A stretch of DNA of 64,000 nt from Oculina patagonica (taxonomy: Eukaryota): positions 7,812,001 to 7,876,000 of the forward strand of contig NC_135768.1 of NCBI RefSeq assembly GCF_052425735.1. The letters are read 5' to 3'. The number at the start of each line of letters is the position of its first letter. Position 1 is the first letter of the stretch. Under the pieces are notes generated by a model. The model searched no databases. It was not told the origin of the DNA and was given only the letters and a program-made list of their open reading frames with translations. Both the position numbers and the translations under genes were made by a program. Positions 1,374 to 38,693 of the stretch are shown one piece after another.

Positions 1374-1593
1374 ATGCAGTGCGAAAAGCCCGCTGGAGGA
1401 TTCCTAAAAATCATTTTGGTAAGTTTGCAGGTTTCAAGCGTTTTACTTCAAACACCATAACACAAGTTAACGAATCACCGCTGCCAAACCAACCGGCTAA
1501 CTTAACTATTCTGTGATCTTTTACAGCTATTAAAACTATTGTTGGCGATTTCGCTATGGACAGAAGCGGCCCGATACATACAGACTGCAAGAG
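1374..1593 (+). CDS. Gene A exons 1-2 (1374-1418, 1527-1593): signal peptide
   Basis: ATG...TTG|GTAAGT, 108-nt intron, TTACAG|CTATTA...AGAG|GTAATG. The joined product has a hydrophobic core (FLKIILLLKLLLAISLW), and its phase-1 end matches the CUB exon. Confidence 0.75.
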
Positions 1594-4500: not shown

Positions 4501-5141
4501 TTGACGTATTTAATCCAATTCTTCAGTTTGATGAATAAGCTACCTGTTAATTTGGCATTATTGTTTCAAGGTTTGAAAACGGACGCGTATTTCAGTCTAA
4601 AAGAGTTTCGCTTATTTTTTCTTGTCCGCCCCGTTCTGTGAAGTAAACATGTAGTCATTAACCATAAATTACTTTCACGAGTGATTCCTTTACTGAATCC
4701 CAATAAGAAAAGGCGATGGTAAATACAATAAAGCCATAATCTAAAACTGGCAAAAAAAAGAAAATCTGCTAGCGTGTCCTTCGTCGAAATCAGCATGCCA
4801 CCGGCTAGAATTTAGAACACCTTGCTATTTTGGGCACCCCATCTCCTTTTTATATCCGAGCCACTTGAATAACAAACGCATTGCAGCATTGAAAATGGCG
4901 GCAAGATGGAGATGTGTTTCAAGGAATTGTAACAATATTGTATCGTGACAAGATCTTTAGCGGCCGTTGTCTCGATCGTCACGCAACGCTTCTTTAAAAA
5001 GGTGCCGGTGTTGTGTGACACTAAAACTGCTTGCTTTACAATAAGAAACTGCTTCCTTTACTTGCTTTCTATTGATTTTTGCTAACTTGCTTCTTGCTTC
5101 TTTCCAACTGTTGTAAAGTGTTGTAAACTGCATTAAAGCGT

Positions 5142-5173
<32 letters not shown>

Positions 5174-5652
5174 TATCAACTTTTGCATCAAACTATTTCT
5201 TCCTCTTAGCCGGTTTGTAGCAAGTAAAAGACGGGTGGCATTGTTCCTCAGATTCAAAACAATTTGATTAATTAGTAAGGCAGAGAAATGTCGACTCGAG
5301 TAACTAATAGACTACAATTTTATCTTGTTTGTTAGAATGCGATATACCGATCGAATTAACTGGTGATAGGGGAAACTTCACAAGTCCAGGTGGATATGAA
5401 GGTTATCCTAACAACACAAACTGCAGGTAACATGAAATAAACGGTGCCATGCGTGGCACGATTTATTGTTGATAAAATTTCATGTTTAAAACGTTCTTGC
5501 ATTATACGAAAGTATCAGCTCCTAAGGTAGGAAATTACCAAGGAGGAATGAAATAAGGAAATTGTTTACTCAAATTCTGTTGCGACAATCGACAAAAATG
5601 AAATGGGCACGGTAACCCAGAGAATTCAGTTAACATTAGTGAGTAGAAATTT

Positions 5653-5687
<35 letters not shown>

Positions 5688-8600
5688 TTTTTTGGAAAAA
5701 TTTTTAAAAAACCATTTTTATGTTGTTAGAAGAACGTTTTAGCCGTTTGACTGACGTCTGTCAGTTTAAACACCATAGTCGTTTGAAAAAAGTCCCTCGT
5801 AATCTCCCCAGCAAGGGTAATTTAGCTCAAATAAATAGACGCGGTTTGGAGAAGTTAGAGCTAGCACTGTTTGGAGAAGTCAAAGAAAATAGGGGGGGAG
5901 AGAGGGTGACAAAATTGGTCCTAGCTATCTTTCAAGCTCGTTCACCTTCCTCGTCTACGCTCCTTTCCAAACCGCTTCTAACTACGCATTATTTTTTTAC
6001 TTTATCTTTCTGTATTTCAGTTGGGTCATCAAAGGAGACTATAACGCCAAAATCAACATCACATTTCACGACTTTGACTTGGAATTGAGCAAGACATGTC
6101 TTCCGTATGATTACGTCAAAGTATCAGACATGTGTAACAAGTCAAAGACTTGGTCAAAGAACCTGGGAACAGGAGACAACGAAGATGGATACTGCGGCAA
6201 TATGACTTCGTTTACTGTCACATCACGCTGCCAGAAAGTTCGAGTGCAGTTTAAATCTGATGACTCCATAACGGGAAGAGGATTCAACGCCACCTTTGAG
6301 ATCATTCCTGTTCCAAGTGAGTCGAAAAATCATTAACATTGGACCAATCGATCTGACTAGCCATCCATCCCCCCTCCTTCTCTCCCTCCTTCCCACCCTC
6401 CCGTCCCCCTCCGTCCGTCCATCCGTCCATCCATCCGTAGATCCAACTACNNNNNNNNNNNNNNNNNNNNNNNNNNNNNNNNNNNNNNNNNNNNNNNNNN
6501 NNNNNNNNNNNNNNNNNNNNNNNNNNNNNNNNNNNNNNNNNNNNNNNNNNNNNNNNNNNNNNNNNNNNNNNNNNNNNNNNNNNNNNNNNNACTTACCTAC
6601 CTACTTTCCTTCCAACCCACCACCNNNNNNNNNNNNNNNNNNNNNNNNNNNNNNNNNNNNNNNNNNNNNNNNNNNNNNNNNNNNNNNNNNNNNNNNNNNN
6701 NNNNNNNNNNNNNNNNNNNNNNNNNNNNNNNNNNNNNNNNNNNNNNNNNNNNNNNNNNNNNNNNNNNNNNNNNNNNNNNNNNNNNNNNNNNNNNNNNNNN
6801 NCCTACCTACTTTCCTTCCAACCCACCACCCACCCACCCACTTACCTCCCTNNNNNNNNNNNNNNNNNNNNNNNNNNNNNNNNNNNNNNNNNNNNNNNNN
6901 NNNNNNNNNNNNNNNNNNNNNNNNNNNNNNNNNNNNNNNNNNNNNNNNNNNNNNNNNNNNNNNNNNNNNNNNNNNNNNNNNNNNNNNNNNNNNNNNNNNN
7001 NNNNNNNNNNNNNNNNNNNNNNNNNNNNNNNNNNNNNNNNNNNNNNNNNNNNNNNNNNNNNNNNNNNNNNNNNNNNNNNNNNNNNNNNNNNNNNNNNNNN
7101 NNNNNNNNNNNNNNNNNNNNNNNNNNNNNNNNNNNNNNNNNNNNNNNNNNNNNNNNNNNNNNNNNNNNNNNNNNNNNNNTTCTCCATACTTCCTTCCCTC
7201 CCTTGCTCCATGCCTCCATCCATCCTTGTCATGTATCGTTTGTTTGTTACAATAATCTGACATCTTTTTCGTGCCACGGTTTATTACAGAGCCACCGGAG
7301 ATACTAACATTCTGCCTCGTTGGTACCAAAAACTGTTCAGAAAGTCTGGTTGTAACGGAAACCTTCGATGAGACGCTGAAGTGCGAGGTATCAGCATCTC
7401 CAGAGGCACTGGTCTATTGGTCTTATCTCGGATCAGATCGCAGGAATGCCAATCAACCACTCGACACCCGTGAAAGGCGCATGATCGACAATCACGATGG
7501 AAGTCTACGGATAAGGGGCCTTAGGAGAAATGACACTGGGTATTACAGGTGTTATGCGAATAACTCCGAAGGAGACGACGAACTTGTGATGCATTTGCGC
7601 GTGAAAGGTAAACTGGGGATTGTCATCTTCCAAATTCTCTTCACAAGTCCCTATATACTTCTTATGGCAACAGTGGGGAGAATTCGATGTTTAATATCAG
7701 TGCTTTTAGTAATATTGTTTGTATACTGGATTTTAATTGACTTTTTTTATTTATTTAAATCCACCTTGAAGCTGAAAAGTAGAGAATAAACTCCATGGTA
7801 ATTTAAAGGGCTGTAAAGTAACCAGTTTGTCAAGGTTTCCTCGGTAATTTGCTGGTACCAGTTGGGTTCGGTAGCAGCTCTAGCAAGTCTCACATGAATG
7901 GCTCGCTATCCTTCGAGAGAACAATAAAACGATAGCAGGAACAATGCCTCTAGCCCTAGAAATCAATAACAACTGCTACGCTAGGGGACTAATAGAATCA
8001 CAAGTTTACGAGAGCTGTTACACTACTGCACCAATTTATACCCTTGGGTAGAAAGAGGTGCTGTAAGAAAATGGTGCTGTGTTCAAAAGCAAACAAGGGC
8101 CTTAACTGCAATTACAGACAAAAATCCAACACCCTAACCATAAGACCATTAAGTGCCTCACTCAATGATTAAAGGATGTACATTTAACGGACCTAAGTCA
8201 GCCTCCGCTATTTCCGATACCATCAATATTATGATAACTGTATGGTAAAGCGAAATCTTATTGCATTGCTGTAAGTTGTATTACTTGAACTCTGGTTAAT
8301 TACCTTTAGCAGTTTCACAGAGATATTTTTCGTTTAGACACACGTAAATATAATATAAAATATTAATATAAGAAATATAAATATAATACCAAAACTCTCG
8401 TATGTAATAAACAAAAACAAAGACGCGGCTGACTAGGGTCCTTTAAGGAAATACTGTCATCCTTTTCTCCAATCTTTTTTTTTCTTTGGTTTTCAGAGAA
8501 GTGCAAATGCCCCAAGGTTATCAAGGCTAACTGGTACGACATTCCACCATACATTCGCGACGAAGGATCCGACCGGGAACCCTCTGGCTTATTCCCGATG

Positions 8601-10647
8601 CTTCTCCAAACAATCATTCCACTGTGTTGTGGAAACTGCTCGGAGGGCGACGGTCCGTCATCGATCTCCTACATCGACCAAAAAGAAAACCTGGTAGCCA
8701 TCAAAAATATCCGCAACTTTGAAACTGATGACACGATAACGTTTCCGATCAGTGGCAAGAAGGAGGATCGTTTTTATCAGAATGACTTCAAGTTTATGCC
8801 CCTGGTAGGCTCGCCTGGCGTTGCTTTTATTGTTGTTGACGAGCCACCTGGTACTTCAGCCAACGCCGTGTTCCAATCTGTCCTGTCTGGTTGGCCTGTG
8901 CTTCTTCTCACGCTCATGATGGCCTTACTGTCCGGGATAATTATGTGGGGACTGGTAAGTACGATTCAATCTTGAACACACTCCCCCCTTCCCCGGTCTT
9001 AACTTTTGCTAGGATATCCCCGGCTTACGTGACTGATGAATAAATGACCTAGCTCCCATAAGTTTCTTAAAGCTCAGAGGTCGAACGGCCGACCGTTGTG
9101 CAAAAGGCTATAGATTATATTCTTCTTGGAGTGAAATCTATAACCTGGACTATTTGTCCTTACTAAGTTATGGATATCTCTTTCTCAGTTTATTTATTGC
9201 TTGTGTCTGCGGCGACCACTGTAGTTCTGTCATCTTGAACATCCTCTTCCCCTGTCTCTTGTAGCATCCAGTCTCCCACGACCGAGATCACCCTCACTGA
9301 GATTATCTTGAAGACCCACAATCACTGAGTAAGGAGATTGCATGTTGATATTGATGGAATTTTTTTACCATGATTTTGTTTTAAAGGACACGTGGTATAA
9401 CCCGGACGAGTTTCCGAGGTCGTTTATCAAAGGCAGCGGAGAAGGTTTCTGGTGGGCTTTTGTTACTATGACAACCGTAGGGTGAGTGCTATCTTAAAAT
9501 ATATTTGCAGAGAAAAGTTTTCTCAGCTTACTTCGTATTCTTCTTTTCAAAGAAGACCTGGTTAAAAGAAGAAAGCAACTCTCCAATAAGTAGTTAGTGT
9601 TGTACATTTTTTTTTTTTTGCTACATATTTTTTGGTCAGTTGAATAACAATTCTCTGCTACCTCGTTTTGTTACAGTTATGGCGATCGATCTCCTCGTGG
9701 ATTTGTGGCTCGTATTTTTGCGATAGTCTGGGTTCTCGTTGGCCTCGTTATCACGTCCATTTTCACTGGTGTTGTGACTACTTCCTTGACAGCCATAACA
9801 CTGAGTACTGACGTCAAACTGTATGGTACTAAGGTGGGTTCCAGCCGTGCCCTTAAATTTAGCTGTTATGCATAGAAACTATGAAACCATTTAACAAAAA
9901 GATGATTATACACTTTCCTGGTACTGTTTATAATACCTGTGCAGCTGAGTTAACAGACGAAATCTTAGCCTGTGACCATTTACACGAAAGCTATAAAGCA
10001 GTACTTTCATAGAAAATACAGCCAATCAGAATACAGGAAAGCCGTTGTATATTCGACGGTATTCAACCCAACCTTCCCATCGTGCGCTGCGATTGTATTT
10101 TCGACGAAATTTAGTAAGCGTATTTTCTATGGCATGGTATAAAATAGTTACACAACACTTTCTCGTTGTATACTATGGAATATCCCACGAGTCACTTGTA
10201 TTTTCTTGGTATACACACGAGCCTTTAGGCGAGTTTGTGACTCGTGGGATATTCCATAGTATACCACTCGAAAGCGTTGCATAACTAGTATATACAAGGT
10301 GCTTCTAACTTTTAAGTCAGTGTATGAATTCCTTGTGTGCGGCCATTCCGAACAACGTTAGATTGGCACTGGTTAAAATGCCGCAATAGGTGGATTTAAC
10401 TTTTTTTTTTAATTTGCGTCTGTGGATAAAAACATCAAGCGTGAAGAATAGCCGTTATTGATTTCATTATTTTGAGTAACACTTTTGACATCAAAGGCAG
10501 TTTGTTGGATAACTCGCAGTAGATGTTATTTTATCCTTGCGTTATGGGTGATCATGTTTTAGTAATAGTTCGACTTAATCGCCGACCGGTTAGCTCAGTT
10601 GGTAGAGCGCCGGACTACCGTGCGAGAGGTCTCGGGTTCGAGTCCCA

Positions 10648-10688
<41 letters not shown>

Positions 10689-13600
10689 TATGCTGCCTTT
10701 GCAATGACATCTGCAAATGGTTTGATATTCTAGTCTTCTCGGATAAGGACGATAAACCGTAGGCCCCGTCTCCTGCATCTTCAGTGTCACGGTCAGCAGG
10801 GGACGTAAAAGAACCCACACACTTATCGTTAAGAGAAGGGCATGATGACTTAAGTTAAAGTTACAACTTTTTTGTTACAGATTGCAGCAGTGGCTAACTC
10901 TACCGAGTACCGGCTAGGACTGAATAAAAATGCGAACATGACAGGTTCGTGTTCACTAAGTTTCTTTGGGTTCACGTGTCTATTTTAACTCCAAAAATGA
11001 CTTTGATGTATCAAAAAAAATTAGGGAACAATGCCTATACGTAAGTAATAAGAGATAAAAAGCAATTTCAAGTCAGATTTCGGAGGTGGAAACGTTTAAT
11101 ATATAAGCAGTGATATCTAACACTTAATGACTGGTCTTGAGGGAAACAGTTAATTTTGTTTGCCGAGATTCTAGGGAAACAGAATCAACTAGTTTCCCGA
11201 GGTACCAGTCATTAAATTATTTGTTATGTGTTAAATATATGAAGACCTGTTAACCTTTAGTCACAGAGTTTAACCTTCCGTAAACGAAACCGTCGTTGTG
11301 TGCGACTATTCAATGTTAAGCTTTTGAGCAGTTCTTTCAAATAGTGCTATTTGTCTCTTGAGAACGAAATTTGGATTTTTTTCTCTTTCTCATTTGGACA
11401 TCTTGAGGATTAAAGGTTAGTTATACTTGCATTTAGCCCTATTCTGCGCAGCATGTTGGGCGAGTCACAACATGATGCGTAGAATAGGGCTAAATGGAAA
11501 GAAATAGTTGTTGCCTCATGTCTCACAAGGGATGAAGAGTATTAAGTAAGTAACGAAGTCTACATGCACTGACATGTGTTTTTACTATGTGATTCTAATC
11601 TCACAGCATATCACGACTTACAAGCGATTGTGGAACCTCTGAAGAATCGCGAAAATGGCTTGAAGGGAGTGTTAGTCGACACTTACGTCGCTGGCGAAAT
11701 GTCAGATTTTTCCAGCGAGGAGCTACGTGTCAATAAGATCATTGATCACAACTCGTACTACGGTATTGTATTTGGAGGAGGGAAGCTGGAAGGAAGAGAA
11801 TTTCAAACCTGCTTCGAGGATTATGTCCTGTCGAATCAAGCTGACATCTTTGAGACTGTGAAGCAGAACACTCAACCCATGAGTGTAAGCTTTTTATATA
11901 CATTCATTATATAAACTGCAGTGGTGTGGCGAGTGATAGCAAATCGAGAAAAATGGTATCACACATGTGTGGATAAAAATGATATCCATACATGTGTGTT
12001 ATCATTTTTGACCAATCAGCTCGCAGAATTTGCCATGTTTCAATGTGAAACATCCTCATGTTTCAAGTCGAAACATCTTCGGATCTTCCTCGGCAATCTT
12101 CGGAAAACTTCGGAATCACTCGTACAACCTTACGACAACATTCTAAAAATTTTCGGAAATCTTCTGAAAATGGTCGGGAATCTTCGGAAAATCGTCAAAA
12201 ACATCGTAATTAGTAGGTTTATCCTCTATTACTCATTGCGTTTAGGGTTATGATTGCTTGGAACGACGATGGTCCAAAATGTCGCTCAACGCCATTCTTT
12301 GATAAAATAATATGCCCTAAGTCCTCTATTTTTATCGTTGAGAAAAGCTGAGAGGGGAGAAATTGGACTAAAGTAGCTTTCATTGTGTTCTTGTTTCGTG
12401 ATTGTGAATACGTTCAAATCTAGATATGTTCGGACCATTACATATCTCGGACATCCCAACAGATTCGTTCTGTTCAAAGTTTGAATTCAATTTTTTTCGT
12501 AATTATGAATGGCTGAGCTACTGAGCGAGTGCGACCCCTAACTCCCTTTACCGGAGAAGAGAATAAGGAGTTGGTAGTGACTTTTTTTCCAGGGAGTACT
12601 GTAGCGTAACTGTCCATTCAGTAAAAAAGGCGTGTAAGCGTCTTACGCGTCCATCTGTCTATTTCTACAGGAACCGTCCGAGAGCGCAGCAGTAGAACGT
12701 TCATCCGGGTTATTTGACGCGACCTCTCCCTTGTTCCAAAACGCCATCTACACGTGCCTCGGCCTGCTGCTGTTTTTTACGGCTTGTGGCATTATCTGGG
12801 ATTACGGCTATATGAGGCATTGGAAGAAAAAAGCAGAAATGGGTAAGACCAACGGGATTTTTAAGAGGATCATAAATTTCTCCCCGCAGTTTTTGTGGCT
12901 TTTTCGGCTAGTGTACGTTACAGGAAATAGCTATTGATACATAACGAGCTCTGTTTGGCTACCACTGACATTCATCTTTGGGAATAACATATTATTAGCC
13001 ATTTTTACTCCTGGGTGGAGAATAGTATTATAGTGAGAGTATTGTGTCTTGCCCAAAAACACAACATAAGGCCAGTGGCCATTACCCAAACCCGGACATT
13101 TGCATTTACAATCCAACACGATCTCCACGTACAGTCAACTCCTACTATTACTGACACCTTCGGGACCACGATTTGGTGTCCGCAATAGAGAAAATACGTA
13201 GTGGCGGGAGGTATTTTCAGTAATTCTTATTCGCCGGGATTAAACTCTTTTCCCTAGTAAGGCGGTGTCCGTAAAAGCGAGGTGTCTGCAAGGCGGGAGT
13301 TGACTTTATTCTTTTAAAGGCACACAAAACCATGTGTGTATGAAGCTAAGTGATAAACTACATTTACTTTACTTTGCATATCATGTGGAAATGGCTGTTT
13401 CACAGTTTTGCAACAAATATATCACGATAAACTTCGAATTCTTCATTTCTAGCCATGGAAATTTTGCCGTATCTTGCATTTCCAAAATGACTGACAAGCT
13501 GTCTCGCGTTGCATTGCAGATGAGCTTGAACTGCTCGGTGGACCTGGGTACGAAATGGCCAAGAGGAACCTGGACATGATGGATGCCTTGATGCAGGAGG

Positions 13601-13695
13601 TTCAGGAGTTTTACGAGAACTGGACAAAGAGACTCGACGATATCACGAATAAACACGAAGAAGAACAAAGGATACAAGCCAAGCAGAAAAAGTAG
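1374..13695 (+). CDS. Gene A: CUB-Ig-fused, iGluR-topology channel with K+ selectivity filter (GluR0/AvGluR1-like), 738 aa, 12 exons
   Basis: Manual model join(1374-1418,1527-1593,5336-5426,6021-6316,7290-7607,8497-8954,9387-9481,9677-9833,10881-10944,11607-11884,12671-12842,13520-13695). All introns are GT-AG, phases are compatible, and the total is 2217 nt, open to TAG. Signal peptide MQCEKPAGGFLKIILLLKLLLAISLWTEA, then CUB, Ig, S1, M1, WWAFVTMTTVGYGD, M3, S2, M4 and a coiled coil. Confidence 0.88.
5142..5173. repeat. (ATC)n microsatellite
   Basis: About 10 perfect ATC units. Confidence 0.95.
5336..6316 (+). CDS. Gene A exons 3-4 (5336-5426, 6021-6316): CUB domain
   Basis: C...LTGDRGNFTSPG..GYPNNTNCSWVI...INITFHDFDLE...C.YDYVKV.D...YCG...VRVQFKSDDSITGRGFNATF is the classic CUB consensus, including the Tyr/Glu/Asp/Asp Ca2+-site signature. 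Confidence 0.93.
6361..7222. repeat. Pyrimidine-rich (CCAT/CCTA/CCCA) microsatellite region with three N runs (6451-6590, 6625-6801, 6852-7179)
   Basis: The flanks and islands between the Ns are simple repeats. It lies in gene A intron 4. Confidence 0.85.
7290..7607 (+). CDS. Gene A exon 5: immunoglobulin (I-set-like) domain
   Basis: LKCEVSASPEALVYW...DGSLRIRGLRRNDTGYYRCYANNSEG shows the B-strand Cys, C-strand Trp and D-x-G-x-Y-x-C motif. Phase 1-1 exon. Confidence 0.93.
8497..9833 (+). CDS. Gene A exons 6-8 (8497-8954, 9387-9481, 9677-9833): S1 lobe, M1, pore helix and TTVGYGD filter, M3
   Basis: WYDIPPY...GLFPMLL...CCGNC...GVAFIV; M1 WPVLLLTLMMALLSGIIMWGL; EGFWWAFVTMTTVG|YGDRSPRGFVARIFAIVWVLVGLVITSIFTGVVTTSLT. 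Confidence 0.92.
10143..10289. repeat. Palindromic interspersed element (non-autonomous)
   Basis: Inverted arms GTATACTATGGAATATCCCACGAGTCAC / GTGACTCGTGGGATATTCCATAGTATAC, with outer AGTTA...TAACT. Confidence 0.7.
10581..10843 (+). mobile_element. tRNA-derived SINE with V-domain-like body
   Basis: A box TAGCTCAGTTGGTAGAGC and B box GGTTCGAGTCCC, followed by TCGGATAAGGACGATAAACCGTAGGCCCCGTCTC...GGACGTAAAAGAACCCACACACTTATCGTTAAGAG, which resembles the V-SINE core. Confidence 0.75.
10881..13695 (+). CDS. Gene A exons 9-12: S2 lobe, M4 helix, cytoplasmic coiled coil
   Basis: IAAVANSTEYRLG...GVLVDTY...YYGIVF...QTCF (S2); AIYTCLGLLLFFTACGIIWDYGY followed by the basic stop-transfer RHWKKK (M4); LMQEVQEFYENWTKRLDDITNKHEEEQ, then TAG at 13693-13695. 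Confidence 0.88.
13132..13307. mobile_element. Tc1/mariner-type MITE
   Basis: TA-CAGTCAACTCC...GGGAGTTGACTT-TA terminal inverted repeats. Confidence 0.6.
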
Positions 13696-15944: not shown

Positions 15945-16688
15945 AGCTGTGTTCACATTAGGCCGAAACATGATTAGTCACATCACGAATGAAACATGTT
16001 TCGTTGTGAAAAGTGTTCACATCAGGCATTGCGTTGCGCGAATCATGATTGAAACATGATTAATCTGATCATGATTGAAACTACCTCGTGAGGTAGTTTC
16101 AATCATGATCAGACTAAACAAGTTAAAAATGGCGGACATGCGGTGAGGAGGCGAGTGCCCAAAAGCTTCAAATTTGGGCTTTCTATGTGACCAAATGTTT
16201 ATTTAAAACATGGGCTAATCAAGCGATATAATATGAATTATCGGTGATGGATAGAAAGCAAAATATTTAGCAGAATATCGCCACGAAAGTTTACGACGGC
16301 GGCTATATAAGCGCGCAGCATTGCAGCATTGCAATGCAAAAACAAAATAAAAATCTTCTGTTACCGACTGATAGCGCAAATTCTGACAATACTGTCTGCT
16401 TGCTAAACACTTGAAAGCCCTGCTCCACCAATGGGCTTGAAAATAGACAGAAAGACAAAGATTTAATGGAAACTTTTTTTGTAATTTCCAGCTATATTTT
16501 TACAGTTAAATAAAGTGTAAAGATTTATGCAAGAACCGTGAAACCGCATAAATTTCACACCAGGCATGAAACGTGTTTGAAACTGACACCTAATGTGAAC
16601 AATGCAATAACAAGCATGTTTAGGTGAAACCTGTTTCGTTGAAACATGTTTATTCTAAACATGTTTCGGGTTAAATGTGAACGCAGCT
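15945..16688. mobile_element. PIF/Harbinger-type non-autonomous DNA transposon (744 bp)
   Basis: TIRs AGCTGTGTTCACATT...CCGAAACATG / CATGTTTCGG...AATGTGAACGCAGCT, TAA TSD on both sides (15942-15944, 16689-16691), and many subterminal AAACATG repeats. Confidence 0.85.
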
Positions 16689-17271
16689 TAATGTAATTAT
16701 TTTGGATTTGGTTTCGCCACCGTCATCAGAAAACCACAATATTATTGAATGGGTATTCCTTCAAGCTAGCTGAAAAGTCTAGTTTACAGCTATTCATTTC
16801 TTAGAGTAGATCTCTAAGGAGCAAACTTCAGTCGGGGATAATAAGTTGTTTTTGGCGGACATTGATCGATTGAGCCCACGGTTTGAGCCAGGATATGCTA
16901 AGCAATATGATGTGTCGTCATAACTACACGCTGCCGTGTGATTGGACAAAAACGATAGGAAATGTTCCTGGTCTGTGCACGAAAATTTGCTTAAAACGAC
17001 GCTTGTTTCCCCCGACTGGACTAATGCTATACTTGAACGTAATATTTGTACGCCTTCTTTTGTCGAGGGCTTTTGATCTTTATATCATTATTTATTCGTT
17101 TGTTTAAAAGGCGTTGAACGTCAGTAATTTGTATCACCTTGTTTAAAATCATCAACACACGCTTTGTAAATAAAGAAACATGTTCACTTCTAGTACTCGA
17201 GATATTTTTTTTTAACTTTGTTTTTCGATTTTCGTTAAGTGATGGGATGTAAAGGTAGAGTTTACATCAAA

Positions 17272-23859: not shown

Positions 23860-26800
23860 CTTCGAAGTGCAGGCAAGAAATAAATAGATTAAAAAAAATT
23901 AAATTAAATAAAACGTATAAACTTTCACCAAAGGGCACCATAGCCACACAACAAATGGCTGACATTTATTTTACCATCTTCCAATGATTTCAATCAATAT
24001 GATAGTATGTGCCACAATTTTGTTCTGTATTTACTGCTATGACGGCTTTCGAATCCAAATAGAAAGAGTGAAAACTTTTCGTTTTATGAAACGCGAAAAT
24101 TTTCCATTTTCTTTAAATAAGCTTTAAAGAAGATCAGCGAAATGTACCAATAAGAAGATAAAAACGTACGGTGTTGAACCATTATGTTTACAATGGAAAC
24201 CCGTCTTACCGTCTTACTATTGAACGGGAACTCCTTTTAATAATAAGAAGAGAAATAGATTATGCAGCTTGCTTATGTCAACTTACTTTCGAGCCATACA
24301 CGGCGATGTCTGATTTGATGATGTCCATAGTCAATGACGTAGTTATGAATGACATCACAAGCGCAATGATAACTAAGCCACACGTGATCCACACGATGCC
24401 AAACAACTTGGAGTGTATGCCGCGGGGAACACGGTCTCCATATCTTCAAAATATCACCAACACTATTGTTACAAACGAAAGTCCTCTTTGCAGAAGAGAA
24501 CAAGCTTAAAACATTGCATCAAACAGCTGCGACATTGCACACAGCACTGTCTGCATCATTTTCACTCGTTTTTGCTAAACTCTACAACATTTTGCGCAAA
24601 ATTGCTGACGCGGCAAGCAAGTTCTGTCCCCAGTTGCACAAAAGTTGGATAGTGATTTATCCGTTGCTTAGCGTTATCCATCCTTTTGTCAATCAAGGAT
24701 AGATTTTTACAACTGATAAAACCCAAATTGGCTACGGTAGAGACAGACAAGCAGCTTCCTCTTGGTACTTTTGCCTGAAGGTGGAGGAGAAAGTTCTAAA
24801 AAAGAAACATTAACGTCTTTGGGTTAGGGTCTTGACAGCTAGAAGTCAGGTAATGGCCGATAGTTGTGCCTCGCCAATTGACGGCAGCAACACAATATTG
24901 CAGATTTTGGACACACGTTGGTGAGCGGTTGCAGTTTTACAAAATAAATGTTTCACTGTGTGTCCGCGCGTTGTGGCTTTATCAGGTTTACCCTCTTTTT
25001 AAGCTTATTGATTGACGTTAGTCACTCACCCTACGGTTGTCATGGTTACAAATGCCCACCACATTCCTTCAATTGGTCCCCGCATGGGAGAGGATGGGAA
25101 CTCGTTGCTATTGAAAAAGAAGTCCTGTTGAAATGACAGAAATATGGTTTTGTTAGACTCAACTGATTTTAAATGTACTTCTGAAGTAGCTATTTTCACA
25201 TTCGTCGTCACAGGCTTTAAAGCAAAAAAGAGACTGCTCTGTTATAAAAAAAAAAAGAGTGTACCCTACTCCCCCAGCAAAAACACAGCAGCGACAATTA
25301 AACAAACTCACCATAAACCACATAACGATTCCAGCGAAAAACGCAGAAATGAAAACAGTCACGATCAAGGGCCATAAGTCAAACACAGCTTTCACCACCA
25401 TTTTGGCAGCGGCTCCTGGTTCATCTGCAGCCACTATAAACGCTACTCCCGCCGATTGAACCAGAGGCGCGAAACCATACTCGTTAGAATAATCCGTTTG
25501 CTCCATCCGCCCATAAACGGGAAAGCTCAACTCAGTCATATCACCTATTGCCTCTCTGACGTCTTTTTCGGTGTCTTTTATAGCTGACGTGTTTGGTCCC
25601 GATGCGCGATAATCAATATCGGTGTAGCCGTGCTGACGACACTCTCCACAGCAGCTGCGCACGACAAGGTGCAGAATTGGCGGGAAAATTCCCGTGACGT
25701 TATCGTTGCTTCCTTCTGCCATATATGGAGGGTTGAGCCAATAGTTTGTGTATAGTTTTCTGTAGCAATTACAGGTTTCTGTAAATAACAAATAATAAAT
25801 ACTTTGATACAAATGAACTATAGAAACTTCATGGGTTGCGAGAGGTTTGGAACAGAGAAACATACTTTACTTAGTTTATTATGCTAATAAACGCCTTTGT
25901 ATTAGCATAAACAGCACGCACACATTAAAAGTTGACATGAAAGTTTTAATAGCAGTGCATTTCTCTTGTTATATGGTGAAGGAATGCTCAAATCGTTCAA
26001 TGTTCGTATGATGGTAAGTGATGGAAGACATATTTGTTTTTAGAGCAATTTATCACGCCAGAAGCCGTCATTTTCCGTGATGAAATGCATAAACGTCGTT
26101 TGGAATGTTCGTGCCTCGCATTTGATATTTGTTTCTTCAGCGTATTATAAATCTGGCCACTGTTTTCAAAAATGCCTAACTCCATAAGATAAGTTTCTTT
26201 GTCGAAACTCGTTTTACATATATCTTTAATTTAAAAGTTTTGTCAATGTCTTTTGATTTGAACCGGTCGGCCTGAAGCAGGTATAACATGGCCAGCAGAG
26301 TCGGCGAATTTGTATTTAGTACAGTAAGCATGCGTTCGTTAGGCAATAGTAAGCTAACCCGCACGTGCGCCCGTAAATAACTGTTGTCAGTATTTCTTCT
26401 AAGTCAGAGATAAAACCTCTTCGAAGCCATGAAATGTTACGAATAAATAATAAAAGAATTGGGCTCGACTAGTTTTGATTTATTGATTTCCAAATTGTGA
26501 CAAATTTGAAAATACACGCGAAAAATAATCCTAAATTGTTCTAAGACCCGCCTCGTAAACAAAACAGTTGAGGCTGGCTTCATACTTAATTTAGTCAGTC
26601 ATTGCTTTTCAAATGCCATGCTCGGCTCCTCAAGGTTTTTAATTGTTATAGATCAATTCAATGGCTTTAAAAATGGTCGACTCCACAAAATTTGTTTCTA
26701 ACATCGAAAGAAAAAATCATTTCAGTGCATGATAAGATTAAGAAAATAAAATTGAATTATCTTTACCAGCGAAAATGACTGCAGAAGGCGTCCCGTTTCC

Positions 26801-32800: not shown

Positions 32801-35800
32801 AAAGAAGCCTGAACAAATCCAGGGATTCGACTGCTTTTCAGATTCAAACCAAAAACTAACAGACTGTCACACTTTTCTTTGAATGTTACTGGAAATGTGG
32901 TGCAAGAATAACCGTTTGCATCTGACGTATATCAAACTCGTAAACCCAGAATGGGGAGTGGGGGTAGGGGGGAGGAGGGTGGTGTAACACCGCAACTTCG
33001 GTTTTCTTTGTGAGATTTTTGGCTATGACAGATATAGCGTCCCAGAGAGGAGTCACTCTTCAAATTCTGATAAACAAACGTGTGGAGACAATGGGAACCG
33101 GGAGAGGGGATAAGAGATCTTTCACATTGTACGTCCAAAGCCATTATTTCTCTTGCCGAAGCTTAAACTTTAAACGAATTTCTTAGTTGACCATTTTTTC
33201 CATTCTAATCAGCTGACTTCCAGACTAGCATGAATATTTTAAGGGGAAATTAAATAAATCTTAGGCCTCGTTTACATTGTATTTAATCTTGTCCGCCAGC
33301 TGTTTGAACGTGTTAGTTTCCATGTTGAGAATGTCGGTGTTAAACTTCTCCTTTGTGAACGTAACGGCTGTAATAAAACTGATACCTGAGAAAAAAAAAA
33401 CAGAATTAAATGATTAAGGTATCATTGGAATCTAGCTAATTAGACTGATGTAAAGTAGAACGATTTCTTCGTAGGTCACACACTACCTCCCGGAAAGAGA
33501 AATGTCATTGTTTCTTAAAATATAACTAACAGGTCACAAAAATGCCCCAGCCATAGAAAACAATAGAGGTAGTGTTAAACGGTAAAGCGGGAGAATAAAA
33601 AATTATAGGTTCCAGACAGGTAGTGGCTTACTGCCTTAGTGAGACGGTAGTTACGGATCCATTGAGGAACTTAATCTATTTTCTTTATAAAATGTTGAAC
33701 ACGTGATGTAAGCCACGTACTGGACAAGTAGGTCGCCTGCTACCAATCGTAGAGCATGCAATTCCTTGAACATTTTTTCAAACACTTTCAAGTTCAGACA
33801 GCCCTTTGAACAAGAATGTGTAAGAAACATAAAAACAACTCACCAGGACACTCCTCTGTGTTGCAAACCCGACCTTCACGGGGCGGTCCTAACCGCAAGC
33901 AATCTCTTCCACCATGCCTTGGAGCTGGACTATCGCACTTTCTTGACCTTACGCTCTCGCCACCGCCGCAAGTCCGAGAACATGCTGAGAACTTAGACCA
34001 CTGTCTATAATCGCCATCAATCGGGCATGGCTGTATGTTACAGTAAGCTGTCTCCTTAGGAGGACCAAGACGAGTACAATCTTGACCTCCGGCCTCCGGG
34101 GTAGGATTTGTACAGTTACGTGTCCTAAAATGAGTTCCACCCGCACAGGATTTTGTGCACGGCCCAAATTCAGACCATGGAGTGTATCCCCCGCTGACTG
34201 GACAAGGCTGAGTGTTGCAAGACCAATTCTCAATCGCTGGTCCTAAACGAGAACAATTTCTTCCGTCTCCCACTGGGACAGGATTGTCGCATTCTCTAGT
34301 TCTGGTTTTGAGCCCTACACCGCAACTTTTAGTGCAAGGACTAAATGCGCTCCAGTTGCTATAGTTACCATCAATTGGGCACACCTTAATAAAGCATGAG
34401 CGGGACTCTATGGCAGGTCCATACCTGGAGCACTCCTTACCACCATGCTCCGGTTTTGGTCGATTGCACATTCTTGTCCGAGTTTCAGTTCCGCTGTTGC
34501 AACTCACGGAGCATGCACTAAAATCCGTCCATTCGCTGTAACCTCCATCAATTGGACACGGATTTGTATTACAGTCCACTTCCTCTCGTTCCGAGCCCAG
34601 CCCCGAACAATTAAGGCCGCCGTATTGGGGACTAGGACGAGTACAAGTTCTAGTTCGATACTGTTTACCTCCTCCGCAAGTTAACGTACAACGGCTAAAC
34701 ATCGACCATTCGGAATAGTTGCCGTGTACAGGGCAATGTCTTAGGAAGCATATTTCCGTACTGTTGGGATAGCCCTGACAGTCATCGCCTCCGTGTTGTG
34801 GTCGAGGATTAGAACAAGACCTGGTCCTTGTCCTCGTGCCCGGGCCACATGAGACAGTACATGGACTGAAGTCAGACCAGCTGGTGTAGTTTCCATCCAC
34901 TGGAAAAGTGAGCATTTAATAATTTAAGAAATACTTGGAATCGCTGGAAGCAGTTAACTTAAATTTGACTAATCGGTCAAAAAAATCAATCAACCAACAA
35001 ACCAATCTACCGGTCTACCGGTGGTTCGGTCGCTCACTTGGTCTGTCTGTCTGTCTGTCTGTCTATCTGTCTGTCTGTCTGTCTGTCTGTCTGACTGTCT
35101 GTCTGTTTCTGTCTTTTGGTTGGTTGGTCGGACTGTCGGTTTGTCTGTAGGTTTTTCAGACTATCCATTTCAATCAGTCAACCAGTTATTCATTTAATCA
35201 ATCAATCAATCAATCAATCGATTAATCAATCAAACAGTCAGTTAGTCAAGCAACTGAATGTTTTATATGCGAGGCCATCATGGATTTCATTTCGTGGGAG
35301 GGTTACTTATCTTAGAAAGGCAAACATCTTTTTGTCTACAAATTACCTCAATTCTAAGCTTAAACGCAATATAACTTTCGGGTGAAAAAATAACTATTGA
35401 TTTGATGCAATCCTGATGTTATATCACCATTGCGTTTCTTTAACTTAGGCAAAGAAAAATAATTAAAAAAAAGCTTCAATGAGCATCTTTAAGAGCAAAC
35501 TGCTGCATTTTACCTGCCTTAGACTTCATAATATAACAAATATCCTCTTTTGACAAGAGACCATTCCAGACCGCAAGCTCATCAATGGTCATCTTAATAC
35601 TTCTCAACCGAGCATTGTTCGCTCCCATCATAAGCGTGTGATACGGTGGAACAGGTGCAAGGCGAAAACTGTATTCAACAGTATCCTTCTCGTATGGCAC
35701 AGAACTGCAGTTTAATAACACATCGACCTTGCTTTCCGTTTTATTCCAAGTTAAAGCCACAAAATTCCATGTCGAATAAGTCCACTTAACTTCAACATGT

Positions 35801-38693
35801 CGTTGTACTGCAGGGCTATTTACGTACACACCGAAAATGTCATTGTCTATTTCCACTGTTGTTCCAACAGCTAGTCTATCAGAAGCAATTTGCATGACAT
35901 ATCGCTTGTCTTGACGGTCGTCGACTTTCAGCCAGAAAGTCACTGTAAAGCCTGTCTCACAGGCATCCGGGTCACTGATGCAGTGGTATGAAAAATCTCC
36001 TAAGTCGGCCCAGCTTCCTAACAAACCGTCCAATTGAAGTCCGTTTTTGCTATTGGCCTCGACACTAGTGGCACCTCTTTGGTCTACAATTCCAGGGTCC
36101 GTTAAGGTGTTGAATGACCAATAATAGCTCGCCTTTTTATACCATGGGTCATCCCCTGTAAAAATTAACCAGCACAATCGTAGGTTCAGATTGGGAATTT
36201 TTTAAAAAGAATTTACCAAAAATTAAACTGCCTGGTCACTTTTTGATTAAAAATAATGTATTTTAATGTTTCGTTCCATTTGGAGAGTCTTTTAATTTAC
36301 ACTTTTTCCAAACCAGTTTCGTGGACCAGTTTTATCGTAATGACATTCAAAAGGTTATTTGCAGTTTACTTGTTACACACTATTATAGTTACCAGTTGAA
36401 AGTAATTCGCGTTGGCTTTAGCTTTGCATTACAACGCTTAGTGAAAGGTTATAACATCTCGCGCCACTTTCGCAACAAATCAGAAGTTAAAGCAAAACCA
36501 ATCGTGACTCGCTCGCATACACTTTTTCGCGCTGCGTGTCGGCTACATGTATTTGCTTCGAGTTTTGTTTGGTTCACTGGATTGTCTGTATTCTATGTCG
36601 TTGGCCAGAGTGATTACTCTGATTTTGGTTTTGCGACACTCAATCGAAAATAGTTCTATAATATAAAAAGAGCTGTTCATTATAAGCTAGTTTATCGCAG
36701 AGTTAGCCCCCAGCATAAGTTCGCCGGTACCCATTAATAAACCTAGGTGGAGAGAGGCACTAGGAGAGTTTTTCACTTAAAAGTGTCCTGGCAAGAACAC
36801 AAAACAATGACCCCGGCTAAGGCTCGAACCCGGACCGCTCGATCGGGAGTCCAGCGCGCCAAACATTAAGCCACCGCGTCTCCCATAAATCCTATTTTCT
36901 TGTTACGCAATTTTAAATAGAATGTTTCGCTTTTAGTTTTAGTTATTGACCAAGTTGTGCGTTGTAGTTCATCGGCACGGATGCATTGCAGGCCTATGTT
37001 TACATTTTAAATTATGCATCGATACATGTGTCGACAAGTGCTCCCACGCAAACAGTACAATCACCTAAACACGACCACTTCAAATACTTAAAAAACCGCT
37101 GAAGCGTTCGAAAAGTTTGTTTACAACTACTAGCTTTTGTTCTTAACTAAAAACAAGATTAAGAGAAATTCAATAGGGATTTATTCGTTTCTGTTTTGAT
37201 TTCGTGTAAATCTCTTATTAGAGTCAGCGTTTCAAACATATCATTTGGCCCAACACCAGGAATCTAAAGATAGCGTTAATTAACATTGTAGTCTTTAATT
37301 CTGTGCCAACAATTGCCAAAAAAGTCGTATTTTGGAGAAATTACAGTAACAGGAACGGCCTCAAAACATAAAAATAGTATTCAAAGACAAAGCGAAACAG
37401 TCAGAGGCGGTAGGCTATGCCGGATTAACGGTACGCGGTGTTTCACAACAAACTGGTAACTACACGACTTGACAATTCACTTGCGAAAAATGTTTGTTAA
37501 AAGCCCCTGACCACTGTTCTTAATTCAAGTTTGTAACAACAAGGATTTCTTACAAAATTGGATTTTTTTCTTAGCAATCAAAATTTGGAATACACTTTTG
37601 ATTCCAAGAAGATTTATACGTTGTGAAGCTTGACCGTTTTTGGCATTATTTATTTTCTGGCGGTTTTCCAAAACGACAGGTTGAACGCAGGTCTCTACCT
37701 AGGACGAGAGAGTGGTTAGAAGGGGTAAAAGAGCGAAGTTACGTAAGAAACGCATTAGAATGAAAACAAAAAATAATCGTTGTATTTTTACCTTGCATAT
37801 GAAGAGCTTAAAATAATACGATGACTAATTTTAGAAACAAGTTTGAAAATCCCTGACTGAGAAGTTTTGTTAGCTTTTATCTGTCGCCTGTGGCGAACTT
37901 TGCATCGAAACAGATCGATTGATTATTGAGACACGAATACAAGAGTATGCTTGTTATATGTAAAGAATTCACGGCAAAGTGTCCTCTGTGAAATAAGATA
38001 AATAATCTCCCTGTATTTTTAAAATTGTGTGCTATCTTTATCACAAAGACAGTCTGACATGAAAATTAACAAATGTCTTTGCGTGTGATATGTAGTCAAG
38101 AAGTGATAGTTTTAATTTAAAATGTAAATATCTCAGCTCAACCTTTATATTTGTGTCGGAGATGGTAACATAATTTACAGATTCATCGACAAAACATTGA
38201 AACTTAGGTCAGTGGAATTTTACGTAACTGCGCATATTAAAAAAAAATGCGTTGCACGGTACTTGAATAGAGTTTTCTATCAACGAAATTTAAGAATTGT
38301 TCATAAATGTAGCAGATCCTACTAAAACTGAATTTTTACCTCGTACATTTTGTTTCTAAACACAATTTTAAATAGTCATCCTCGACTGTCTCGGTGCACT
38401 AAGCAAAACGATATCCATGCGTATTTTAAGTAAAAATTGGAAAGACAATGTTAATTGCATTACATCGACAGCTAAACACATATTTAGCAAGCAAAGTCTT
38501 ACCGGTAACTGTAAGTCCGTTTGCAACACGTGCACGAAAGCACTGAAATAAAAACAAACCGAAAATAAATGTTGAGAATCACACAAGAAGACGCACATAG
38601 TTGGCAATTACACTTATACAGCCGCTTTTTACATCTACGTACCAGTTGCACCACAAGTAGAAATGCGAGGCTATGAACCTTTCCAAAAACCAT
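20145..38693 (-). CDS. Gene B: LamG/pentraxin-6xTSP1-SEA-6xFN3-fused, iGluR-topology channel with K+ selectivity filter, about 1817 aa, 20 exons
   Basis: Manual model complement(join(38693-38643,38542-38503,36155-35514,34899-33844,33385-33276,32710-32640,32284-32142,31598-31299,30800-30504,30126-29821,29014-28709,28056-27754,27072-26767,25778-25312,25124-25030,24443-24287,23859-23793,22758-22487,21429-21255,20434-20145)). Total 5454 nt, all phases compatible, 18 GT-AG introns and one GC-AG intron. Confidence 0.85.
20842..21194. mobile_element. MITE in gene B intron 19
   Basis: Inverted termini GCACTTTCCATTT / AAATGGAAAGCGC with internal AAACCGGT/AACAGGTTT and GGAA-rich subrepeats. Confidence 0.55.
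21673..22001 (-). mobile_element. Penelope-like element terminal fragment (pLTR) with hammerhead ribozyme and inverted end
   Basis: Contains the minimal type-I hammerhead (21757-21801) and a perfect 30-bp inverted repeat (21917-21946 / 21972-22001). Degenerate direct repeats AACAGTAGATGTATAGT / AACAGTTGATGTCATAGT flank it. Confidence 0.75.
21757..21801 (-). ncRNA. Minimal type-I hammerhead ribozyme motif (Penelope-associated)
   Basis: The minus strand reads UGACU-CUGAAGA-U-GAC-uucugcucagguu-GUC-GAAA-C-GUC^-AGUCA. Stem I is UGACU/AGUCA, stem II is GAC/GUC, and a palindromic ACGU replaces stem III. Confidence 0.75.
22813..23236 (-). mobile_element. Penelope-like element remnant: reverse-transcriptase fragment plus degenerate hammerhead
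   Basis: QWRNTRSVVNWFSSIEDK...FLIFDIVDFYPSIS...IEIIMHSRKTLMY (RT motif around FDI.DFYPSI). At 22823-22864 the minus strand reads ACAGU-CUGACGA-UCGC...GUGAAACUC...ACUGU. Confidence 0.75.
24287..25778 (-). CDS. Gene B exons 14-16: S1 lobe, M1, pore helix and TTVGYGD filter, M3
   Basis: YWLNPPY...GIFPPIL...CCGEC...GVAFIV; M1 WPLIVTVFISAFFAGIVMWFM; EGMWWAFVTMTTVG|YGDRVPRGIHSKLFGIVWITCGLVIIALVMSFITTSLT. Confidence 0.92.
26767..31598 (-). CDS. Gene B exons 8-13: six fibronectin type-III domains, one per exon
   Basis: Each 297-306-nt phase 1-1 exon reads P..PP.NV...N.SSTSI.V.W......HG.LLGY...Y.....L..L..YT.Y...V...T..G.G..S.....T.ED, an RPTP/Sidekick-type FN3. Confidence 0.95.
27326..27530 (+). 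mobile_element. tRNA-derived SINE (Meta-domain-like), diverged
   Basis: GGGATGGCGCA..GTGGTGAGAGC A box, GGATTCAATTCC B box, then TCTCCGGGTTCGTCGGTTTTCCT core. Confidence 0.7.
29090..29161. repeat. Short tandem repeat (GGTATGCCACATG / TTTTATGCATTAT units)
   Basis: Directly visible direct repeats. Confidence 0.8.
30945..31096. mobile_element. Palindromic MITE (about 150 bp)
   Basis: CCAGGCTCCGGTTGTTCAAAGGGTGGATAA...TTATCCACCTTTCAAACAACTGGGCCAGG, with internal GGATA/TATCC repeats. Confidence 0.8.
32142..33385 (-). CDS. Gene B exons 5-7: SEA-like domain
   Basis: GISFITAVTFTKEKFNTDILNMETNTFKQLADKIKYNVHKIY...IDVKW...GPGVQCVLQFGF follows the SEA pattern (F...F..DL.N..S..F..LA..I). The three exons bridge TSP1 and FN3 in frame. 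Confidence 0.65.
33844..34899 (-). CDS. Gene B exon 4: six thrombospondin type-1 repeats
   Basis: Six tandem units of xDGxYxxWxxFxxCxxSCGxGxxxRxRxCxxPxPxxGGxxC...CxxxxCP in a single 1056-nt phase 1-1 exon. Confidence 0.95.
35041..35232. repeat. (TCTG)n and (TCAA)n microsatellites
   Basis: TCTG run at 35041-35105 and TCAA run at 35197-35232. Confidence 0.92.
35514..36155 (-). CDS. Gene B exon 3: LamG-like/pentraxin (ConA-like jelly-roll) domain
   Basis: YWSFN...GLQLDG...DLG...CISDPDACETGFTVTFWLK...WNFVALTWN...IDELAVWNGLLS matches the Laminin_G_3 pattern and resembles the N-terminal domain of ADGRD1/GPR133-type receptors. Confidence 0.85.
36375..36658. repeat. Interspersed repeat (MITE-like) with further copies at about 44727-44962, 42478-42540 and 15810-15900
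   Basis: The AAACCAATCGTGACTCGCTCGC...TTTTCGCGCTGCGTGTCGGCTACATGTATTTGCTTCGAGTTTT motif recurs in both orientations within the window. Confidence 0.75.
36696..36885 (-). mobile_element. tRNA-derived CORE-like SINE (same family as 17272-17731)
   Basis: Shares CCCCAGCAT..GTTCGCCGGTACCCATT..ACCT.GGTGGAGAGAGGCACT...CAAGAACACAA...GGCTCGAACCCGGACCGCTCGATC. Degenerate copies lie at about 8030-8160 and 13000-13110. Confidence 0.8.
38503..38693 (-). CDS. Gene B exons 1-2 (38693-38643, 38542-38503): signal peptide
   Basis: MVFGKVHSLAFLLVVQL|CFRARVANG-LTVTG. Donor CTG|GTACGT, 100-nt intron with a long pyrimidine tract and TTTCAG acceptor, donor CCG|GTAAGA in phase 1. Confidence 0.7.

Follow-up and report, generated by a model that had tools for sequence, protein, structure and literature searches.

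Textbook accounts link the bacterial glutamate receptor GluR0 to the ionotropic glutamate receptors (iGluRs) of animals through a single rotifer protein. That protein, AvGluR1, is described as a eukaryotic subunit of standard iGluR architecture that possesses the M4 helix and a TXVGYG signature and is activated by polar amino acids (PMC12332018). In the reviews and phylogenies up to 2026 that we consulted, GluR0 and AvGluR1 are the sole iGluRs named as bearing the K+ signature. Here, we describe two spliced genes, A and B, in a 64,000-nucleotide stretch of the genome of the coral Oculina patagonica (contig NC_135768.1, positions 7,812,001 to 7,876,000; hereafter the window, in which positions are numbered from its first letter). 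Both genes are intact and lie tail to tail, with 6.4 kb between their 3′ ends. Gene A (+ strand, 1374–13695, 12 exons, 738 codons, stop at 13693–13695) encodes a signal peptide, a CUB domain and an immunoglobulin (Ig) domain, followed by a 466-residue module comprising the S1 lobe, the M1 helix, a pore loop (P), M3, the S2 lobe, M4 and a long helix. Gene B (− strand, 38693–20145, 19 exons, 1815 residues, stop at 20145–20147, in a frame without internal stops) encodes a signal peptide, a LamG domain, six TSP1 repeats, a SEA-like region and six FN3 domains ahead of a module organized as in gene A. We propose that the products of both genes are channel subunits from a metazoan branch of the GluR0/iGluR superfamily, namely clamshell-gated, K+-selective, inhibitory channels that carry adhesion ectodomains, and we put the probability of this reading at roughly 0.6.

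A sequence-only reading of the window had proposed two spliced paralogues with a common module, down to the start codons at 1374 and 38693 and the ectodomain-to-S1 junctions at 7607/8497 and 26767/25778; gene models built with orthologues and the GT/AG rule as guides place all of these exactly there. The gene A product is identical over 738/738 residues (100%) to P0173, the hypothetical protein ACROYT_G035167 [Oculina patagonica]. For gene B, orthologues served as the reference in place of a database protein of the same species; its product aligns over the full length with the Stylophora orthologue LOC111334203 at 72.6% identity and end to end with an equally long Montipora protein at 67.5%.

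After intron removal, the filter in genes A and B reads WWAFVTMTTVGYGD, with TTVGYGD in both. The segment WWAFVTMTTVG occurs twice in the window (9450–9482 on the + strand and 25061–25029 on the − strand), each time with a GT donor directly after it. The filter is thereby split by an intron; the exons end at 9481 (+) and 25030 (−), and YGD opens the next exons at 9677 and 24443. RNA-like contigs from four runs support the gene A filter splice. The gene A pore scores 48.5 bits against Ion_trans_2, for which the Pfam cut-off is 22.5, and a family profile searched against the PDB returned only K+ channels (Lmo2059, KvAP, Kv1.3, Kv4.2, Shaker and KcsA; E values of 5e-14 to 1e-9), with the matches confined to M1-P-M3. 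Residue conservation was counted over 138 non-redundant family modules. The first Gly and the Asp of the filter are present in all 138; the Thr, Tyr and second Gly are each found in 137, and the Val in 122, with Leu in 14 more. The canonical K+ filter claimed from the sequence is thus borne out, G-Y-G-D being retained in at least 137/138 modules, and on our reading the pore sequences are constrained as expected of a working K+ filter.

The lobes that flank the pore were compared at the level of predicted structure. AlphaFold2 (AF2) modelled the module of the Nematostella orthologue with a mean predicted local distance difference test (pLDDT) score of 81.5, using a 20-sequence alignment, and the full-length gene A protein with a mean of 78.8. 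In the gene A model, a signal helix (residues 8–26) precedes the β-rich CUB and Ig domains (43–272) and S1 (280–386); M1 (405–429), the pore helix (438–454) and M3 (466–499) then intervene before S2 (509–618), M4 (643–685) and a terminal 47-residue helix (691–737), which is the iGluR topology that had been claimed. In a Foldseek search of the PDB, the top 50 matches were all ligand-binding domain plus transmembrane domain (LBD+TMD) chains of AMPA, NMDA or kainate receptors (E ~1e-11, 450–490 columns). The best VIA-align matches were the GluR0 ligand-binding cores 2pyy (Z 19.3) and 1ii5 (Z 19.2), with root mean square deviations of 2.8–3.0 Å; these alignments take in 203–208 of ~220 residues and run over model residues ~17–364, across the membrane insert. 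Next in rank came bacterial amino-acid-binding proteins. The LBD+TMD of GluA2 (Z 17.7, 351 residues) and of AtGLR3.4 (Z 17.5) aligned over 340–353 residues, reaching model residue ~420, through M4. The sequence-only reading had named the folding of S1/S2 beforehand as a check on its claim, and by both VIA-align and Foldseek the module does model as a clamshell.

Sequence comparison gives a different picture. A profile of S2 alone matched an ancestral amino-acid-binding protein (7e-4) and GluR0 (3e-3) in the PDB, with neither an animal iGluR core nor the AvGluR1 binding core among the matches. Pfam Lig_chan (PF00060) scores gene A at 30.2 against a cut-off of 30.8, the family members P0020, P0039 and P0061 at 32–34, and the gene B orthologue at 16.3; SBP_bac_3 gave no match in the coral proteins. 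Within the predicted pocket, the Asp of the S2 motif L.D.Y, the Gly of the YG motif and the Pro of the S1 motif SFP are each retained in 135/138 modules, and the Glu of the S2 motif NS.EY in 122/138. The S2 Asp aligns with the Asp that binds the amino group in binding proteins and in GluR0; in gene A it is residue 555, and the S1 Pro is residue 356.

In sequence, bacterial GluR0 is a closer relative of the family than the animal iGluRs are. GluR0 (Synechocystis Slr1257) and bacterial GluR0-like proteins have in common with the coral proteins the TxVGYGD filter, a K+-channel-like pore helix and the motifs FP..G..WWA.VTMTTVGYGD, T(T/S)SLT, vDa..D and YGVV; the GluR0 clamshell is split by the pore as in the coral module, and GluR0 provides both the best structural match and, among the channels compared, the best match to S2 in sequence. 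Aligned by hhalign with a 350-residue bacterial GluR0-like protein, the family matches with 99.6% probability (E 1.5e-24), and the 171 aligned columns extend from M1 to the YGVV of S2. In contrast to GluR0, with its minimal two-helix architecture, the coral proteins possess an added signal peptide, large ectodomains, M4 and a C-terminal helix, and their S1 is cysteine-rich, unrecognisable by sequence and without a conserved Arg. The family is best described as a metazoan GluR0-like lineage in which M4 was acquired or retained.

Relative to AvGluR1, the N-terminal domain of the coral family is swapped for adhesion modules or missing. The animal iGluRs (AMPA, kainate, NMDA, delta, epsilon and lambda) have the LBD+TMD fold and the topology with M4 in common with the coral module, whereas the coral proteins bear a K+ filter instead of a Q/R/N-site pore, and similarity of sequence is undetectable beyond the pore. 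The LIVBP-like N-terminal domain (ANF_receptor) was never found by Pfam in the family proteins examined; adhesion-type ectodomains (CUB+Ig and LamG/TSP1/FN3 by Pfam) replace it, in agreement with the earlier claim. The pore helix and filter of Kv1/Shaker, Kv4, KvAP and KcsA are nearly identical to the coral sequence (E down to 5e-14), but the coral channels have no voltage sensor, their pore lies inside a clamshell, and their orientation in the membrane would be inverted.

Taken together, a working model for these proteins emerges. In each protein an adhesion ectodomain stands in place of the iGluR amino-terminal domain, before an S1/S2 clamshell split by M1, the pore loop and M3, whose sequence is that of a true K+ channel. 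Four subunits would form a K+-selective pore whose loop dips in from the cytoplasm, the orientation known from GluR0. When the clamshell closes on a small ligand, it would tug on the M3 linkers and open the pore, which would then carry an inhibitory current that hyperpolarises the cell. A standard α-amino acid is an improbable ligand, since the carboxylate-binding Arg appears to be missing and the amino-binding Asp is invariant. Through its ectodomain the channel would be tethered to a partner, either on a different cell or in the matrix, and the ectodomain may also influence gating in the manner of the N-terminal domains and CUB auxiliaries of iGluRs; the C-terminal helix probably aids assembly.

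Several observations weigh against this model. A GYG filter alone is no guarantee of K+ selectivity, and the SYTANLAAF gate motif of iGluRs, expected where M3 ends at its top, is absent, most of the 138 modules having TTSLT in its place. The structures are predictions, and a four-copy complex prediction for the gene A pore segment 398–503 returned a score of 0.15, which is neutral on assembly. The S1 profile had no match among PDB sequences, leaving this lobe with no detectable sequence relative; of the InterPro/HHpred-type matches that the sequence-only reading expected, Ion_trans_2 was found directly, and the periplasmic-binding fold by structure. S1 also bears extra conserved cysteines. In the twelve columns after the invariant S1 Pro, Arg occurs in at most 19/138 modules at any one column, the equivalence within S1 being set by motif position only, and the clamshell may bind no small ligand. 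The module tree considered below was built by FastTree with a midpoint root only and has several long branches. Evidence from RNA that bears on the fusions themselves is set out after the two alternatives that concern the pore and the clamshell.

The first of these casts the proteins chiefly as receptors for adhesion or signalling, in which the pore is non-selective, of very low conductance or serves assembly only, and no relevant K+ current flows. HCN channels, which also bear GYG, are poorly K+-selective, and some database names follow the ectodomain (cubilin, contactin-3-like, sidekick-1, PTPRQ), others being 'uncharacterized' or taken from the pore (Kv subfamily F member 1). We regard such a role as improbable: the pore helix and T-T-V/L-G-Y-G-D are nearly invariant over 138 divergent modules, the pore matches Kv1, Kv4 and KcsA chains at E values down to 1e-12 or better, and constraint of this kind would be unexpected in a vestigial pore.

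The apparently missing Arg, taken with the invariant Asp, points either to a ligand without an α-carboxylate or to no small ligand, and in the latter case the clamshell could be a rigid coupler in a contact- or force-gated channel, with pulling or clustering of the ectodomain opening the K+ pore. Such gating would suit the apparent absence of the Arg across the family, the five to six conserved S1 cysteines, which could lock the lobe, and ectodomains that extend to ~4100 residues of FN3, TSP1, LamG, F5/8C, MAM, EGF and SRCR domains, typical of adhesion and matrix proteins. Yet about 60% of the sampled members have a signal peptide only, with no ectodomain, and still keep the Asp (135/138), the Pro (135/138) and the YG motif, which argues for a pocket function that is independent of any tether. 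The SEA-like region lacks a G-S cleavage motif, and no GAIN/GPS domain was found by Pfam in the gene B exons or in the family members examined. Gating by contact or force without a diffusible ligand is thus, in our estimation, an unlikely alternative to the ligand-gated model, though not a negligible one.

Adhesion-type modules tied to a signalling membrane core are familiar from Neto1/2, SOL-1 and LEV-10, which are CUB auxiliaries of iGluRs, and from adhesion G-protein-coupled receptors (GPCRs) and polycystin-1. Unlike in Neto1/2, SOL-1 and LEV-10, the adhesion modules of the coral channels lie within the pore-forming subunit itself; unlike adhesion GPCRs and polycystin-1, the coral proteins have no seven- or eleven-transmembrane core. 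G-SVVV is the cleavage site of autoproteolytic SEA domains. In the SEA-like strand of gene B, the Gly is followed by Val (Ala in Stylophora) and not Ser, so that the G-SVVV motif is absent and autoproteolysis is unlikely, and six FN3 domains separate this region from the membrane core. With neither a cleavable SEA nor a GAIN domain, the analogy to adhesion GPCRs and polycystin-1 drawn by the sequence-only reading loses strength. The K+ selectivity, hyperpolarising action and gating by contact or tension that this reading proposed are treated here as hypotheses about the family.

The last points against the model concern transcription of the fusions. Logan contigs from four RNA-like runs were aligned to the window at 7180–13179 with a 95% cut-off. 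In the gene A module they contain the GT..AG joints 8954>9387, 9481>9677, 9833>10881, 10944>11607 and 11884>12671, a loose contig end at 12842 reads on into the last exon, and the spliced module exons constitute one open frame reading WWAFVTMTTVGYGDRSPRG. The Ig exon (7290–7607) had zero depth in all four runs, in which the channel exons are covered, and the Ig-to-S1 junction is without RNA there. In three runs, the contigs that cover S1 all break off 11 nt before the S1 exon begins (8486–8497), and in a related coral transcript contig, L006, S1 is preceded by 30 unrelated nt with an in-frame stop. There may be an alternative 5′ exon or an ectodomain-less isoform of the channel. The zero depth and L006 would also suit a gene-model artefact, in which two neighbouring genes supply the ectodomain exons and the channel exons separately, and no fusion proteins are made. 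The runs differ from the window by ~4% in the S1 exon and may derive from relatives, so that a faster-evolving Ig exon may drop under the cut-off. Gene B words were present in one RNA-like run only, at a share of 0.07.

Fused open reading frames (ORFs) exist as uninterrupted frames on short contigs bearing untranslated regions (UTRs), with the CUB+Ig+channel fusion encoded on such contigs from related corals. P0176 (CUB+Ig+channel, 81% identical to gene A) is encoded on mRNA-like contigs of 4.5 and 3.7 kb (JGI 3300008046 and SRR6255887), the fused ORF of P0020 lies on a 3.3-kb contig from a marine assembly, and P0290 (FN3 array+channel) on a 5.2-kb contig; across JGI, Logan and ENA, the contigs with CUB+Ig+channel frames measure 2.6–4.5 kb. 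Independent gene models from Nematostella, Hydra, Hydractinia, Stylophora, Montipora, Acropora and octocorals show the same architectures. Every junction preserves the reading frame with matching phases, and the S1 exon begins in phase 1 and possesses no start codon of its own. On the strength of the fused frames, the independent models and the matched phases, we rejected the artefact of separate genes, which is very improbable indeed.

Given the fusion of channel and ectodomain in genes A and B, we queried how widely the module occurs. A profile of the S1-M1 exon retrieved 744 proteins at E≤1e-3 among 1.8 billion representatives, with lengths of ~450 to 4200 residues. CUB+Ig+channel proteins occur in sea anemones, stony corals, octocorals, Hydra, Hydractinia and a scyphozoan, and LamG+TSP1+SEA+FN3+channel proteins in Nematostella, Stylophora and Montipora; other members bear FN3 arrays, F5/8C, MAM, SRCR, EGF, C1q or C-type lectin domains. 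Beyond Cnidaria, ectodomain-less members come from the annelids Owenia and Dimorphilus, the brachiopod Lingula and the hemichordates Saccoglossus, Ptychodera and Glandiceps. After the animal members, the next-best matches were bacterial proteins of 350 residues with SBP_bac_3, Lig_chan and Ion_trans_2. In the 529-Mb genome of Oculina patagonica, the S1 exon is found at no fewer than 36 loci, which form several clusters. On the contig of the window (contig 11), a further family gene lies on either side, at 7,800,221–7,803,507 (~9–12 kb before the window start) and at 7,942,710–7,947,160, so that the A/B pair belongs to a cluster of four or more genes. The gene before the window is probably ACROYT_G035165 (P0175), a paralogue with CUB+Ig+channel architecture that shares 80% identity with gene A.

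In the FastTree phylogeny of the modules, a CUB+Ig clade (support 98) and an FN3-bearing clade (support 99) are sisters (support 94), and the EGF-bearing members have a separate origin among ectodomain-less clades. Ectodomain type thus tracks the phylogeny of the channel, which suggests that fusions were few and ancient, with remodelling within the FN3 clade. The sequence-only reading had called the ectodomains interchangeable; several types do exist, but they follow the clades of the module tree and are not freely exchanged. Phase 1 is found at every boundary among signal peptide, ectodomain modules and S1 in both genes, a signature of exon shuffling, and the ectodomain exons would have been gained by shuffling of phase-1 exons. 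Genes A and B belong to sister clades and probably descend from an old inverted duplication. The tail-to-tail pairing, as claimed, is real and is conserved in Nematostella (OW051986.1, 2,024,971–2,064,157), where a CUB+Ig gene (+), a small gene and a LamG/TSP1 gene on the opposite strand follow one another; the two Stylophora orthologues each lie on a 470,170-bp contig. A bolder extension, to which we would give well under an even chance, holds that the family is an unrecognised pre-bilaterian branch of the glutamate-receptor superfamily, made up of GluR0-like K+ channels with M4 and kept in cnidarians, annelids, brachiopods and hemichordates. Repeated adhesion fusions in cnidarians would then have produced inhibitory receptor channels opened by a non-amino-acid ligand, by cell or matrix contact, or by both, and A and B, tail to tail since the ancestor of corals and anemones, may be co-regulated partners in one heteromer.

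Searches of the literature and of locus names, with subscription-only papers outside their coverage, returned no description of the family, which agrees with the earlier statement that no characterised family has this architecture. The family is old, widely distributed among cnidarians and, it appears, unstudied, and it could represent a type of inhibitory receptor channel that has so far escaped recognition. The gap between GluR0 and iGluRs would be filled by such a large and conserved family of animal proteins, in which a GluR0-like pore and S2 are combined with M4 and modular ectodomains. If the proposal is true, K+-selective, presumably inhibitory channels of the iGluR type persisted in animals, and these would be the first channels of the ligand-gated type with built-in CUB, Ig, LamG, TSP1 and FN3 adhesion modules. 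Pore subunits with adhesion modules make a coupling of contact to membrane potential directly testable, and orthologues in Nematostella and Hydra place such work in experimentally feasible hosts. With so many loci in the coral, the family likely matters for cnidarian neural or epithelial physiology.

The exons of both genes are collected in Table 1. The seven module exons have the same phases in the two genes, and lengths of 458/95/157/64/278/172/176 in gene A and 467/95/157/67/272/175/290 in gene B. One gene B intron is GC-AG (donor 30502–30504, − strand, FN3 exon 8); the remaining 28 introns in the pair are all GT-AG. Pfam detects CUB, Ig, LamG, six TSP1 and six FN3 domains as the sequence-only reading listed them, with E values of 7e-9 to 3e-15 for the six FN3 exons; the SEA domain on that list is detected only in the Montipora orthologue (P0285, residues 599–703), and marginally so, at 26.6 bits against a cut-off of 26.4. 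Searches with single exon pieces gave no Pfam match for the S1, S2, M4, coiled-coil, SEA and signal-peptide exons.

Table 1. Exons of genes A and B, in window positions, with the support for each.
Feature	Position	Strand	Support
Gene A exon 1: start codon, first half of signal peptide	1374..1418	+	100% match to P0173
Gene A exon 2: remaining signal peptide	1527..1593	+	P0173 identity; AF2 helix residues 8–26
Gene A exon 3: N-terminal part of CUB	5336..5426	+	tblastn to P0010 residues 36–65; P0173 CUB 45–160, 6e-19
Gene A exon 4: remaining CUB, phase 1 donor before gap	6021..6316	+	Pfam CUB 1e-12
Gene A exon 5: Ig (I-set), phase 1-1	7290..7607	+	Pfam I-set 1e-10; zero RNA-like depth
Gene A exon 6: cysteine-rich S1 lobe and M1	8497..8954	+	RNA-like contigs, splice 8954>9387; family profile
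Gene A exon 7: turret, pore helix, first half of filter (...TMTTVG)	9387..9481	+	Ion_trans/Ion_trans_2
Gene A exon 8: filter YGD, M3, start of S2	9677..9833	+	Splice 9481>9677 in 4 runs; Ion_trans_2, Lig_chan
Gene A exon 9: small S2 exon, conserved NS.EYRLG motif	10881..10944	+	Splices 9833>10881, 10944>11607
Gene A exon 10: main S2 lobe, invariant Asp of L.D.Y, YG motif	11607..11884	+	Splices; conservation count
Gene A exon 11: end of S2 and M4	12671..12842	+	Splice 11884>12671; AF2 helix 643–685
Gene A exon 12: long cytoplasmic helix (putative coiled coil), stop	13520..13695	+	Loose contig end 12842; AF2 helix 691–737
Gene B exon 1: start codon, signal peptide; donor is the least certain junction	38612..38693	−	Gene model
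Gene B exon 2: LamG / concanavalin-like, phase 1-1	35514..36155	−	Pfam Laminin_G_3 3e-11
Gene B exon 3: six thrombospondin type-1 repeats in a single exon, phase 1-1	33844..34899	−	Pfam TSP_1 x6, 2e-53
Gene B exons 4–6: SEA-like region	33385–33276, 32710–32640, 32287–32142	−	Colinear with P0285 residues 599–703
Gene B exons 7–9: FN3, one per exon, phase 1-1	31598–31299, 30800–30504, 30126–29821	−	Pfam fn3
Gene B exons 10–12: FN3, one per exon, phase 1-1	29014–28709, 28056–27754, 27072–26767	−	Pfam fn3
Gene B exon 13: S1 lobe and M1	25312..25778	−	38% identity to gene A exon
Gene B exon 14: pore helix, first half of filter	25030..25124	−	Sequence motif, gene model
Gene B exon 15: YGD, M3, start of S2	24287..24443	−	Ion_trans_2
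Gene B exons 16–19: S2, M4, C-terminal helix, stop	23859–23793, 22758–22487, 21429–21255, 20434–20145	−	Lengths and phases match gene A exons 9–12

The window has a G+C content of 38% and a single three-part assembly gap at 6451–7179, which falls inside the CUB-to-Ig intron of gene A (6317–7289). The CUB donor (6316) and the Ig acceptor (7290) are both in phase 1 and join in frame, and in orthologues CUB passes to Ig with no additional residues, including P0176, a 740-codon uninterrupted ORF on mRNA-like contigs from two sources; an exon hidden in the gap is therefore unlikely. Larger open frames elsewhere in the window gave no match to Pfam.

In Nematostella, the small gene between the two channel genes encodes 156 residues with no Pfam match, and no counterpart was seen in the window at 13700–20100; a GalNAc-transferase-like gene lies upstream, with a seven-transmembrane gene nested within. 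In the window, an intron of gene A contains a high-copy stretch at 9980–10980, with a word depth of 10^3–10^4 in all four RNA-like runs, and a 59-nt inverted repeat (10137–10195 and 10237–10295) that is 86% complementary; it looks like a repeat of the miniature inverted-repeat transposable element type. The LamG-TSP1 intron of gene B holds an open frame of a short tandem repeat at 34993–35160 (−), which reads DRQTDRQTDRQT and is a simple intronic repeat outside the gene B model.

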